Shown here in pieces: positions 1,095-64,000 of a stretch of DNA of 64,000 bases. Source of the stretch: Salpingoeca rosetta (lineage: Eukaryota; Protista; Choanoflagellata); assembly GCA_033442325.1 (NCBI GenBank), contig JAWQFM010000001.1, positions 2,711,238-2,775,237 of the forward strand, in the 5' to 3' direction. The position numbers and the translations under genes are program-made. How positions within the stretch are numbered: position 1 is the stretch's first letter; each line of letters begins with the position of its first letter. The notes under the pieces are model-generated. The model saw only the letters and a list, made by a program, of their open reading frames with translations. It ran no database searches and was not told where the DNA came from.

Positions 1095-3667
1095 TTCGAA
1101 TGTTTTTGATGATCGTTGAGGCGTCTGCCACCTGAAGTTACACACACACACACACACACACACACACACACACAATGATGAGAAGATCCAATTCTTCAAC
1201 CCCAATTCTGCATATCACCATGCACTCCTCGTCCTCCTCCAACTGCGTGGACGTACATATTGCGACGGAAGCACATCTGCGTCGTTGAAGGGCGAAAACA
1301 CCTCATTCGTGTCGAGATTCACGTGCACGTGCGCTTCAAGCGGAAGTGCGGACACCACGTCCATCAGCGACGAGTGCACCCCAATCAGGAAAGGCAGCGT
1401 CGCACTGCAGACAGCCATCGTGTGTGTGTGTGTGTGTGTGTGTGTGTGTGTGTGTGTGTGTGTGTGTGTGTGTGTGTGTGTGTGTGTGTGTGTGTGTGTG
1501 TGTGTGTGTGTGTGTGTGTGAGGGAGCCGGTTTGCGGCGACAAGTAATGGCAAGGCGTGCACAGTGCACATTGCGACAATACGAGGGAATAATCAGACCG
1601 TTCGTGTCTCCTCATGCTATGCAGATGCACATCAGCGCATTCAACGCCACATCACCACCCACGACCACTCATCGCTTATTACCACCGCCACCACCCACGA
1701 CCATCCATCACTCGATCAACACGATCGTCACCCCCCCCCCCATTGCACGTACGATGATCCTGCGTTCTGTGAGGAGGGATGCGAAGACCTGCATGAGGTT
1801 TGGCGCCGACAAGCGGTTCACCAGCGTGTCAACGAGCGGCAGTGCGGAATGCACGAGCGGACGCCGGCAGTCTGGCGTGTGCAGCAGCACCATCTGCGTA
1901 TCGGGTGTGCAGGTAGGGGGTAAGGGGGTGGGGGATGAGGTGCACATGAACGCGTATGGATGCGTATGGATGCGTGTGGATGCGTGTGAATGCGTGTGGA
2001 TACGTGTGGATACGTGTGAGTGACTGGCTGCGCATGTGTGTGTAGTTTGGCTATTCTTGCGCGTCCCAGGAGCGTGTGCATCAACCATGACATGAGCGAC
2101 ATGCACAGCGGCGTGCCTCACCTTCTGTGATGGCGGAGAGATGGTGATGGCTTGGGCTAACAATACAAGTCAGCACATGACAGCAGAACGCACATTGCGT
2201 GCGTACATGTGGTGAGGGAGGTGCACCCAAAGAGACAAACACTGCGCATCTTGCACGCTGAACAACACACACACACACACATACACACACATGCACACTG
2301 CGCGTTAGGTCACAGTCTGTACCGAGTGGGGCCGAGAGGGAGACGCCGGGGGCCGTCCGGAGAGCATCGAGGAAGGTCGAGCTGCCAAACCCTTTCTCCA
2401 CATCATACGAGTCGGCAACAACACCCAACAGTCGCTGCGTACATGCCATGTATGTGTGTGTGTGTGTGCGTGGGGCGTGGGAGAAGAGATTTGAGCACGG
2501 CCGTGGCAAACGTGCTGGTCTACGCGGGCATGCAATACACCAAGCAGCAATCTGGCAGATGCACAAACACACGTGCACAACACAAATACACACAAACACA
2601 AACACACGTACACAACACAAATACATGCACACAAACACAAACACACACTCACGCGGAAGAAGACGTGCCAGGGCAGGCGCGATACTAGACAGAATAAGAC
2701 GGCAGTTGACGCTGGGGTTGCAGGTTGCTCCTGCAGCACGTAAATCCGCACAGCGTGAATGCCAACTTGAACAGCCAAACAAAAAGCAGAAGAGGACACA
2801 CACACACACACACACACACAGACACAGACACACACACAGACACACACAGACACACACACACACCGCATCTCACTGCACGTGCACTCCAAAACGCGAAGCA
2901 GTAACTCACTTGCAAACAGTATCCATAGAAAAGAGCGCTGCTAGCAGTTGTCAGCCCAAACGTGAAGAACTGGCGCTGAAGTCCAACGGCGTGGGATGTG
3001 TCGTAAGGGAAACAAAACAGTGCCAGCTTATCCTCGGGGACCTACGGGCACATTGAGCGGCAATGTGCATGTGTGAATGTGTAAGAGGTACACAACAGTA
3101 ACCAAGAGATCGCACACACACACACACACACACACACACACACACACACACACACACACACACACCACCACCACCACCACCACCACCACCACCACCACTC
3201 AACAAGAAGCATTCAGAAACACAACGCATGAGAGATCATACACAAGCCCAATCCCAGCAGCTTAATCAGTCAGCCCCCTCGCAACACCCACCACAGAATG
3301 CTCATCCAGCGGCGGGTATGCCGCGTGTAACCGCGGGTTGACAGCGCCTGGAACAAGCACACACCCAAAAGCGGTCACGTCATCCCCGAATGGCACATCA
3401 ATCTCAAATCATACACACAACCTCACAAGAACACACAAGAGATCTGCTTTCCGTGCTCAGCCACACAACGCACATACAAGTCAAACAACTCGCACATACA
3501 AGTCAAACAACACGCACACACACACACACACACACACACACACACACACACATACACACGCGCATACACACCACACCTGTGGGTGGCACGTGGAATATGT
3601 ACAGGCCCTCGAATAGGTGTTTCAGTTCGTCTTCATCCCCACCACCGCCATCGCCTTTGCTGCCCAT
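1095..3667 (-). CDS. DENN-domain Rab GEF, DENND1/connecdenn-like; multi-exon, 3' part lost in the gap
   Basis: Spliced exons give MGSKGDGG...HLFEGLYIFHVPPTG (ATG at 3667), uDENN RQFFTFGLTTASSALFYGYCLQ (~2910-2978), cDENN LVNRLSAPNLMQVFASLLTERRIIV (~1750-1895) and CSATLPFLIGVHSSL...VHVNLDTNEVFSPFNDADVLP (1257-1411). Introns are GT-AG. Confidence 0.85.
1953..2019. repeat. 10-bp tandem minisatellite (TGGATGCGTG-like, ~6 copies), intronic
   Basis: gcgtatggat gcgtatggat gcgtgtggat gcgtgtgaat gcgtgtggat acgtgtggat acgtgtga. Confidence 0.85.
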
Positions 3668-4149
3668 CTCCGTCGTTGTGTTGTTGTGTGGGCGCGATGA
3701 GCGGACATGAAAATTAATGGAAGATAACCACAAATCTTCCAAAACTGCATCGGCGATTTCGCGGATTTGAGGAGAAAGCAGTGGCTGGTGGGTTGGTGGT
3801 GGGAAAGTGGAGTGTTTGTGTTGTTTGTGTTTGCGGCTTGCTTCATCAGCTGCGATGCTGGTGGTGGTCTGCTTTCCAACGCAGCACATCAAACACATCG
3901 AACCCGGCACACGCTCACCAGCCATTTGTTGTCCCACATCGCCCACCTGAACTCCCACCAACCCCTCCTCCTCTTCTTCCTGTTGACGTGACAGCAAAGG
4001 GAAGCGGTCCTTCCTTGCGCGTGCTTGCTTGCTTGGGAATTCGCAGCAACACACACCGTGTCAGCTGCCACTGCTGCCGTGACACTACCGTTGCGACTGC
4101 TGGTGTCATTTCGACTGCGCCCTTTGCCCTCTCGGTTTGCACCACAGTC

Positions 4150-61600: not shown

Positions 61601-64000
61601 GCACACACACCAAAATACACACCACAACATACACACCACACCATACACACGCCACACGCGACTGCCCATTGAATGCTATTCATGTGCTGCTGTGTCCTGC
61701 AGACGTATGTGAATGTCATGAAGGAGAGCATTCAGAAGACAATCTCCATCAACAACCCCTTCAACTTCCGGCACGTCTCCTACATCAGGGTCAGAAGCAA
61801 TTAAATGCCTGTCGTGTTGTGTATGTGCGTGTGCGTATGTGTGTGTGTATGTGTGTATGTGTGTGCACTCGCGACCATTCTGACTTCCCATGCACCACCA
61901 CCATCGCCGCCATTCTTCCCTCCTTCTCCCTCCTTCTCGTGTCCAGAATCTCCACCAGTTTGACGGCGAATACGGCGGCGGTGCGTCTCCCGCCCACACA
62001 CACACACACACACACACACACACACACACACACACACACACACACACACACACACACACACACACACACATACGCGCGCACACATAGGCGCGCACAACTG
62101 CTGCTGCTTGTTGTTGGCTGTTTGTTGTTTGTTGTCGTCGCGTGCATTTCATGCTTGCGAGTATCCTGGCGCAATTGCCCTTCCGGTTTACTCCTTTGTG
62201 CTTGCCACACCACCACCGCCACCGTCACACACACACACACACACACACACACACACACACACACACACACACACACACACACACACACACACACCAATAT
62301 GTCCGCGCCACAGGGCCGTGCGTGATGCTTGCCAGTCCCGGTATGCTGCAGAGTGGTCTCTCCCGCGAAATCTTCGAGCGGTGAGAGCAGCGTCTCATGT
62401 GTGTGCGCACGCTGTTACTGCTGCTGTTGCTGTTGTTGTTGTTGTTGTTGTTGCTGCTGCTGTTACCATTGCTCCTGTTTGGGCCTTCTGTATCGTTGAT
62501 TGTGCCTACATGTTCGCGTGTGTGTTAACGTCTTCTTCGTCTGTGTGTGTGATTCTATCTCTGTGTGTTATCTCTCTGCCCATGGCTCTGTGGTTGCGTG
62601 TGTGCGTTGCAGGTGGGCTTCGAACAAGGCCAACTGTGTGCTGCTCGCTGGCTACGTTGTGAATGGCACCCTGGCAAAGGACTTGCTCAAGGCGCCCAAG
62701 AAGGTGCACTGTCCACAATGACGCTCCAACCACACACACACACACACACACGCGCGCGCGCGTGTTGCTTTCTGTTTGCGCCCGTGTCTTCATATGTGGT
62801 CATCGCGCTTGATGCCCCGTGTCTTCGCGCCCATCTACAATGCGCGCGCACGTGTGTGTGTGTGTGTGTGTGTGTGTGTGTGTGTGTGTGTGTGTGTGTG
62901 TGTGTGTGTGTGCGTGTGTGTGCGATTACGGGCAGACGAGGCTGTTGGCATACATTCACAGACGCTTGTTGCACCTCCACCTTGCACATGCACCGATACT
63001 GCAACCAGGTGACGAGCGAGGCCGGGCACAAGATTGATCGCGAGTGCGACATTGCGTACATCTCCTTCTCCGCACACGTCGACTACGCACAGAACAGAGA
63101 TTTCATTCGCGCCCTCGACCCAACACACATTGTGCGCAAGTTTCGGGGAGGATAGATGGTGCAGGGGAGAAGACACAAGATACAGCGACTGTCTGTGTCT
63201 GTCTGTGTGTGTCTGTCTGTCTGTCTGTCTGGCTGTCTATCTGTGTGTGTGTGTGTGCTGGCCTCTTGTTGATCGAACTGTGAGCCAACGAGTACTCCGA
63301 CTCACCCATATGCATTCACGCGTATCTGTTGGTGGCAGGTGCTCGTGCACGGAGAGAAGCACGAGATGGGGCGGTTCAAGATGCAGATCACAACAGACCT
63401 CGAGGCAGACCAGAAGACAGCCAGCGTCTTTGATCCGCGAAACGCAGAGACCGTTCTCCTCCACTATCGCGGAGAGAAAATGGCAAAGGTGTGCTGTGTG
63501 CGCGCGCGCGCGTGTGTGTGTGTGTGTGTGCGTGTGTGTGTGTGTGTGTGTGTGTGCGTGTGTGTGTGTGTGTCCGTTTGTGTGTGTGTCCGTTTGTGTG
63601 TGTCCGTTTGCCTGTCTGCCTGCCAGTCTGTCTGTCCGTCTGTCTGTGCGTCCGTCCGTCTGCCTGTGACGCGCGTACCCAATCTCTGCCTACCGATCCA
63701 CACTTCTCTCCATCTGCGCACCTTGGTCCGCGCTGACGCTGTGACTCACATGCTTCCCTCTCCCCCTCCCCCGATTGTTGCACTGCAGGTGCTTGGGTCG
63801 CTGGCGCAGTCTGGTCCGGTGCAGGGCCGCCGCGTCTCCGGCATCCTCGTGGCGAAGGAGTTCAACTACATGGTTGTCGCTCCAACCGAGCTCGGCGGTG
63901 CGTGCACTCACGACTCGTCTCTGTTGTCATGAGGGACTGTGAGGCGGTGCAGGTGCACGTGTGCCTGTCTGCCTGCATGTGTGGATGTGTGCTTGTGCAT
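58645..64000 (+). CDS. CPSF3: Cleavage and polyadenylation specificity factor 73 kDa (CPSF73/Ysh1 endonuclease); 3'-partial
   Basis: ITPL|[119 protein letters not shown]. Confidence 0.96.

Follow-up and report, generated by a model that had tools for sequence, protein, structure and literature searches.

Splice-site-anchored TG and CA biases vary independently at the two ends of introns in a 64-kb window of the Salpingoeca rosetta genome

Do complementary dinucleotide repeats at opposite ends of an intron form a base-pairing code for splicing, or does each repeat belong to the splice site beside it? The question is raised by a single 64-kb stretch of the genome of the choanoflagellate Salpingoeca rosetta (below, the window), in which a preliminary description had noticed that many introns carry a TG-rich tract after the GT donor and a CA-rich tract before the AG acceptor, and had proposed that the pre-mRNA forms long UG:CA duplexes that juxtapose the splice sites. 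The polarity itself is confirmed and lies far beyond chance. The two ends of the introns vary independently of each other, and the data lend no support to a base-pairing 'structure-guided splicing code' as the general mechanism.

On its plus strand the window holds 138 perfect (TG)≥4 and 110 perfect (CA)≥4 tracts, about 74 repeat bases per kb, against no TA, no AT, four GA and four AG tracts. Introns were scored on the sense strand by comparing perfect runs of (TG)≥3 and (CA)≥3 between 5' and 3' halves, both in 52 introns validated by homology or annotation and in the full set of 133 predicted introns. TG bases amounted to 1570 in the 5' halves versus 221 in the 3' halves of the validated introns (3034 versus 815 in the full set), and CA bases to 229 versus 881 (590 versus 1710). 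Counted by intron, the 5' half was the richer in TG in 38 validated introns and the 3' half in 3 (p = 1e-8; full set, 78 versus 16, p = 6e-11), while CA prevailed in the 3' half of 24 and in the 5' half of 5 (p = 6e-4; full set, 46 versus 20, p = 0.002). Where an intron contained both repeats, the order was TG..CA rather than CA..TG in 11 versus 0 validated introns and in 18 versus 2 of the full set (p = 4e-4). The 13 examples that had been put forward for this order all read GT, TG-rich, CA-rich, AG on the sense strand, and the counter-example at 62705-63008 is indeed reversed, CA then TG. The bias is present in genes of either strand. The preliminary description had the polarity flip with gene strand; TG..CA is its own reverse complement, the plus-strand order is TG on the left and CA on the right whichever strand the gene is on, and the flip is therefore an identity that adds no evidence.

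Positional profiles, run across this window as the preliminary description had recommended, showed that the bias is anchored to the splice sites. In the validated introns, coverage by TG repeats was 25-38% at +20..+70, against 1-4% near the acceptor; for CA repeats it was 20-24% at -50..-30, against 1-4% near the donor; and in flanking exons coverage by either repeat was about 0-2%. A tract in the expected place, at one end at least, was present in 44 of the 52 (85%), with 12 introns carrying both tracts, 23 TG only, 9 CA only and 8 neither; the corresponding numbers for the 133 were 19, 53, 19 and 42, so that a 5' TG tract occurred in 54% of introns (40% TG alone), a 3' CA tract in 29% (14% CA alone) and both in 14%. 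Overall, sense-strand UG exceeded CA in introns (3849 versus 2300 nt). Intron length, with a median of about 250 nt, did not depend on repeat content (rho 0.00). The keto (G+T) skew fell along the validated introns from +0.4..+0.5 to -0.3..-0.4, and this gradient outlasted the repeats: with all (TG/CA)≥3 runs masked, the skew was +0.19 in the 5' part (validated introns, +0.26) and -0.06 in the 3' part (-0.12), 98 of 123 introns (p = 1e-12; 43 of 46 validated) had the higher value in the 5' part, and repeat-free introns still showed the gradient (p = 0.006). The main compositional shift left after masking was a fall of G from 0.28 to 0.19 and a rise of C from 0.25 to 0.35. The splice consensus was CAG/GTGCGT at the donor and TGCAG/G at the acceptor, preceded by only a weak pyrimidine bias; the branch-point motif CTRAY was rare, and CTCAC was enriched at -40..-70 in a manner inseparable from CA-richness. 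The S. rosetta introns analyzed are two-halved. The 5' half is G+U-rich, often with microsatellites of the (UG)n or UGYG type beginning some 10-50 nt past the CAG/GUGCGU donor; the 3' half is A+C-rich and G-poor, often with (CA)n-type microsatellites that peak 30-60 nt before the UGCAG/ acceptor; and the two halves vary independently.

These counts depend on where the introns are. Gene models came from an in-house gene finder based on two-strand dynamic programming with codon log-odds, GT/AG weights and an intron-length prior but no repeat information, and from a second version constrained by the ends of annotated genes. The annotation used was that of the public locus GL832955.1 (GCA_000188695.1), identical to window positions 10691-32693; the 375-aa translation of the exon at 20691-21818 on the minus strand is 100% identical to S. 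rosetta glutathione synthetase (GSS). What the models describe are canonical GT-AG spliceosomal introns whose removal keeps the frame and joins conserved protein segments. Two of them are exact by public proteins, the joined exons around 21819-22036 and around 19972-20162 reproducing P0001 and P0241, respectively, and profile coordinates (TIGR01652 or PF20168) are contiguous across 46 further junctions. In the flippase (P4-ATPase) gene, TIGR01652 coordinates of the exons meet at 40/41, 131/133, 168/171, 327/329, 523/524, 567/569, 615/617, 761/763, 817/818, 848/850 and 897/899, and short exons lacking a profile match of their own have lengths that fill the TIGR01652 gaps. The models of ERD2, GSS and a 581-aa gene reproduce the annotated product lengths. 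The PDS5 exons follow PF20168 coordinates in order, but the model product is about 5% short of the annotation, and therefore only the profile-supported part of PDS5 was counted as validated. The unvalidated part of the 133 certainly holds some errors. A model-free test, asking whether any of the six frames is open between neighbouring tracts, was powerless in this GC-rich sequence (G+C 55%).

The same polarity was found in two uncultured marine relatives. On an ENA metagenome contig (L004), whose flippase exon has about 70% identity, the acceptor is immediately preceded by some 95 nt of CA-rich sequence; a TG/GC-rich tract comes past the next donor, and the acceptor after it again has a CA-rich stretch in front. 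On a TARA metagenome contig (L089) encoding a MORN protein 64% identical, two successive introns have TG runs past their donors and are CA-rich before their acceptors. A relative with 56% GSS identity (L002) has kept the orthologous GSS intron, with a G-poor, C-rich 3' part and no TG or CA repeats. More distant loci (L003 and L005-L008) contained zero TG/CA repeat bases, and in 80 metagenome P4-ATPase loci (360 kb) the density of repeat bases had its median at 0 and did not exceed 6.7 per kb; the latter and the flippase relatives L005-L008 are so distant that they serve as negative controls only. The trait is thus common to close relatives of S. rosetta and not general to these genes.

The explanation we lean towards, with a little more confidence than doubt, is that of two mutually independent biases. 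Each would be tied to the splice site on its side, and the microsatellites would be the extreme, orientation-filtered form of both. We favor it because the polarity is strong in validated and in all predicted introns; because the profiles track the splice sites and drop almost to zero in exons; because the gradient persists without repeats; because the two tracts do not co-occur, intron ends are not matched to their partners and introns with a single tract or no tract fold no more stably than shuffles (z about 0); because intron length is independent of repeats and the last 60 nt are slightly more accessible; and because L004 and L089 share the polarity. Each bias would then probably belong to its own splice site and be read, or merely tolerated, as single-stranded RNA, and it would give introns an identity signal in a genome where introns and exons otherwise do not differ in composition. 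(TG)n.(CA)n microsatellites, which expand easily, would persist only where their orientation agrees with the local bias. In those introns where both tracts happen to coincide (about 14%), an end-to-end helix would become possible, as a by-product and not as a selected feature. Putative proteins that bind UG and CA and define the two ends separately, as the preliminary description had alternatively considered, would fit this independence. In vertebrates, CA-repeat or CA-rich intronic elements are bound by hnRNP L and UG-repeat elements by TDP-43 or CELF. By analogy, the S. rosetta tracts may be single-stranded dinucleotide repeats that act alone on a nearby splice site, in line with the independence seen here; unlike those elements, which are gene-specific regulators, they are near-universal in constitutive short introns.

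Several points weigh against this explanation. A functional signal and a passive filter against decoy signals would look alike in the sequence. One-tract introns exceed shuffles in long-range pairs from 5' to 3' part (30 versus 16), so some bridging tendency is inherent in the composition. A modest positive co-occurrence, with an odds ratio (OR) of up to about 1.5, is still compatible with this sample size. All introns come from a single 64-kb window, two genes dominate the validated set, and the splice sites rest on homology, annotation and the in-house predictor.

Two further explanations seem to us possible, each at a clearly lower level of credence. According to the first, the TG/CA microsatellites are a passive by-product, i.e., neutral slippage in a repeat-prone genome with no positive role, their orientation being filtered solely by decoy avoidance, which would disfavor A and AG near the donor and G (hence AG and GU) near the branch site and acceptor. 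In line with this, (UG)n has no A and (CA)n no G, both being AG-free; A makes up 14% of the 5' third of introns and G 19% of the 3' third; the relative at 56% protein identity has repeat-free orthologous introns that are nonetheless G-poor in their 3' part; length is indifferent to repeats; and strong TG runs follow two stop codons at which no donor is known. However, the tracts extend over +10..+120 on the donor side and -100..-20 on the acceptor side, far past the usual range of splice-signal constraint, and 85% of validated introns have at least one in the expected place. Moreover, (UG)n is a string of donor-like GUGUGU, so a pure decoy filter should deplete it on the donor side and not enrich it. 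The second explanation, about which we are similarly hesitant, goes beyond the two independent biases in assuming a two-part intron-definition code specific to the lineage of S. rosetta and its close relatives, with a GU-rich/(UG)n element on the donor side and an AC-rich/(CA)n element on the branch/acceptor side that act redundantly. Redundant action would explain why 5' keto skew and 3' amino skew are negatively correlated (rho -0.44, p = 0.001 in validated introns; rho -0.15 in the full set). Within such a code a polypyrimidine tract may be replaced by the CA element, or bridging may operate in the both-tract subset.

The intron-bridging duplex code proposed originally, in which (UG)n pairs with (CA)n across the intron, joins donor and acceptor and is selected for doing so, we consider improbable. 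It has arguments on its side: the 19 both-tract introns are more stable than their dinucleotide shuffles (mean z -2.4, p = 5e-5) and form 43 bridging pairs versus 19 in shuffles, the order TG..CA holds in 18 of 20 introns, and fish provide a precedent for such helices driving splicing (PMC4691745). Yet these 19 are merely 14% of the 133, and their stability is a trivial consequence of complementary repeats. In the folding comparison that had been suggested, extra stability over shuffles was seen in the both-tract introns and not in the remaining 114, with one tract or none, whose z was about 0 (all introns, mean z -0.34, p = 0.09). Nor did 5' TG and 3' CA tracts occur together within introns above chance. 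With perfect runs the OR was 0.41-0.46 in the validated and 0.79-0.83 in the full set, and over a range of imperfect-run thresholds 0.2-1.5, all not significant; across exons it was 1.10, no different from within introns. The two tracts are independent or show a slight mutual avoidance. When the first 100 nt were paired with the last 100 nt, the mean duplex energy within an intron was -43.9 kcal/mol. Ends taken from different introns averaged -46.1 kcal/mol and the two intron ends flanking an exon -47.0 kcal/mol, and the real pairing was equalled or surpassed in stability by 96% of random re-pairings of intron ends. Since an intron's own ends pair no better than those of other introns or those across an exon, a pairing code would lack specificity and would loop out exons as often as bridge introns; equally good pairing across exons would favor exon skipping. 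In addition, the last 60 nt were slightly more unpaired than in shuffles (0.467 versus 0.433, p = 0.03), mostly in CA-bearing introns.

A role of intronic UG repeats through the poly(UG) quadruplex (pUG) fold is the least plausible of all: at least 12 uninterrupted UG repeats do occur in the 5' half of 19 of the 133 introns versus the 3' half of 5, and TDP-43 binds human pUG-fold sequences, which show enrichment close to splice sites (bioRxiv 10.1101/2021.12.21.472683), but most TG tracts here are shorter or interrupted, and the CA half and the gradient left after masking would find no explanation in it.

The fish precedent given in the preliminary description is correct. In zebrafish, AC repeats follow the 5' splice site and GT repeats precede the 3' splice site, the two co-occurring across introns, and such introns show extra stability, pairing-dependent splicing and U2AF2 independence (Lin et al. 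2016, PMC4691745). These (AC)m-(GT)n introns make up 0.09-2.3% of introns across fish, with 2589 of 98,694 detected introns in zebrafish (PMC4691745). Teleost and lamprey (AC)m-(GT)n introns and those of S. rosetta have in common that complementary AC/GT-type repeats lie near opposite ends of spliceosomal introns, that single repeats are not conserved between orthologous introns, and that introns with both repeats are predicted to form an end-to-end helix. The S. rosetta polarity, by contrast, is the reverse of the teleost one, as had been pointed out before and as the half-intron totals bear out; the fish repeats co-occur above independence within introns but not across exons, whereas those of S. 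rosetta do not; introns with both repeats account for 14% in S. rosetta and those with at least one for about 68-85%, well above the fish values; and function and U2AF2 independence have been demonstrated for the fish introns. With opposite polarity and independent ends, a resemblance between repeat architectures does not imply a common mechanism, and complementarity by itself is no sufficient ground for inferring a pairing code. Human poly(UG) tracts of at least 12 repeats are enriched near splice sites and TDP-43-bound (bioRxiv 10.1101/2021.12.21.472683). S. rosetta introns resemble human intronic poly(UG) (also bioRxiv 10.1101/2025.04.22.650042) in a non-random placement of sense UG near splice sites and in an excess of UG over CA on the transcribed strand; unlike there, they show the enrichment specifically on the 5' side, together with a CA-rich 3' side. 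Judged by tract length, most S. rosetta tracts stay below 12 repeats, and a minority of introns would be candidates for the pUG fold.

Animals have their closest unicellular relatives in the choanoflagellates, and S. rosetta is transfectable and editable. With most introns carrying simple one-end elements (85% of the validated set), it offers a convenient system for studying how short introns are recognized without a strong polypyrimidine tract or AT-richness. Exon-intron annotation in this lineage also gains a cheap cue from the polarity. We found no report of repeat polarity in choanoflagellate introns in the open-access literature, subscription journals lying outside the search.

Individual introns illustrate the classes. 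In the flippase gene on the plus strand, three introns carry both tracts, with boundaries as originally described and supported by contiguous TIGR01652 coordinates of their flanking exons. That at 5746..5938 is TG-rich from about 5757 and has (CA)n at 5882-5913; it is followed by an exon matching TIGR01652 104-131 and preceded by a 29-aa exon that lacks a match of its own but fills 74-103, and its fold (z -4.4) includes 57 bridging pairs. The intron at 12740..12948, whose upstream exon matches TIGR01652 899-936, has an imperfect TG-rich 5' part and a (CA)39 at 12870-12947 that runs into the CAG acceptor. In the third, at 14090..14369, (TG)n begins at 14095, and a CA-rich stretch at 14220-14332 contains repeated ACTCAC-like units. 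The commonest class is represented by the TG-only intron at 8797..8953, between exons matching TIGR01652 329-392 and 456-523, which lacks a CA tract and is largely taken up by (TG)n at 8794-8913. A CA-only intron with (CA)44 at 11948-12035 lies at 11814..12096, between exons matching 818-848 and 850-897 of the same profile. PDS5, likewise on the plus strand, repeats the pattern. Its intron at 25205..25431 has both tracts, follows an exon (25064-25204) matching PF20168 206-252, precedes short exons whose summed lengths fit the PF20168 gap, and has the same ends in the in-house prediction as in the preliminary description. That at 25797..25998 also has both, with (TG)12 at 25846-25869, CA at 25951-25962 and a fold z of -3.6; that at 26097..26326 is TG-only, its (TG)36+ at 26118-26225 being long enough for the poly(UG) quadruplex fold; and that at 31056..31295 is CA-only, with (CA)24 at 31229-31276 between exons matching PF20168 879-939 and 941-994.

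The MORN-protein intron on the plus strand, given earlier as 19970-20162, is correct at its end but starts 2 nt further on, at 19972, according to the public protein PTSG_00179 (P0241), which the joined exons match exactly. It contains (TG)10 at 19995-20014 and (CA)25 at 20112-20161 ending in CAG (fold z -4.3). The boundary of the glutathione synthetase intron at 21819..22036 on the minus strand proved exact; plus-strand CA at 22013-22028 is the sense TG past its donor, plus-strand TG at 21831-21872 corresponds to sense CA runs before its acceptor, and the joined exons equal the GSS protein (P0001). The tail-to-tail GSS-MORN pair at window 19699-22693 is kept in an AT-rich relative with 46% GSS identity (L003, 98-2154), a case of conserved microsynteny without any TG/CA repeats. 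For ERD2 (KDEL receptor), on the minus strand, an intron had been described at 18569-18859; it has both tracts on the sense strand, with its ends at 18567..18860 in the model whose 214-aa product equals the annotated length.

The other introns of interest are predictions only. A both-tract intron at 44772..45005 on the minus strand, in what had been called the DDX49 region, has the strongest predicted bridge (z -5.3, 62 bridging pairs), and a CPSF73-like gene on the plus strand has an intron at 60375..60781 with a long TG array, short CA runs and 103 bridging pairs. The reversed intron at 62704..63008 on the plus strand has CA at 62731-62750 near the donor and (TG)30 at 62853-62912 in its 3' half, and a second reversed intron, sense CA then TG, lies at 53750..54015 on the minus strand. 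The ends of 60375-60781 were reproduced identically in the in-house prediction, those first given as 25800-25998, 44772-45002 and 62705-63008 differ from it by 1-3 nt, and for 51447-51800, 45412-45853 and 2443-2680 the prediction placed the ends elsewhere, these three being unvalidated.

Repeats also occur outside known introns. Strong sense TG runs lie less than 200 nt past the stop codons of the 581-aa gene and of ERD2, at 16892-16937 and about 17240-17437, a (TG)23 beginning 5 nt past the stop codon of the former; no splice donor is known at either place, and the runs could mark 3'-UTR introns, or else the TG bias could follow exons generally rather than donors. The annotated ERD2 model has a 35-nt terminal exon (17438-17472) after a 229-nt intron, and the alternative unspliced reading also gives a protein of 214 aa. 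In the gap between two predicted divergent genes at 47419-47967, (CA)28 at 47773-47828 and (TG)9 at 47504-47521 are placed such that a sense-strand CA run lies upstream of the predicted start of each gene; these repeats may belong to 5'-UTR introns. Long AAC-type repeats at 4270-4455 and 20318-20422 read as poly-asparagine in open frames; an early version of the gene finder called them exons, with support neither from annotation nor from homology. Runs of (GC)n/(CG)n often abut TG runs, as at 51460-51553, 14140-14150 and 62750-62760 and at 1165-1220 of the marine relative L089, and the resulting long alternating purine-pyrimidine stretches could form Z-DNA. Finally, a (CA)42 at 241-324 borders an assembly gap of 692 N at 326-1017, suggesting a long repeat as the cause of the gap.

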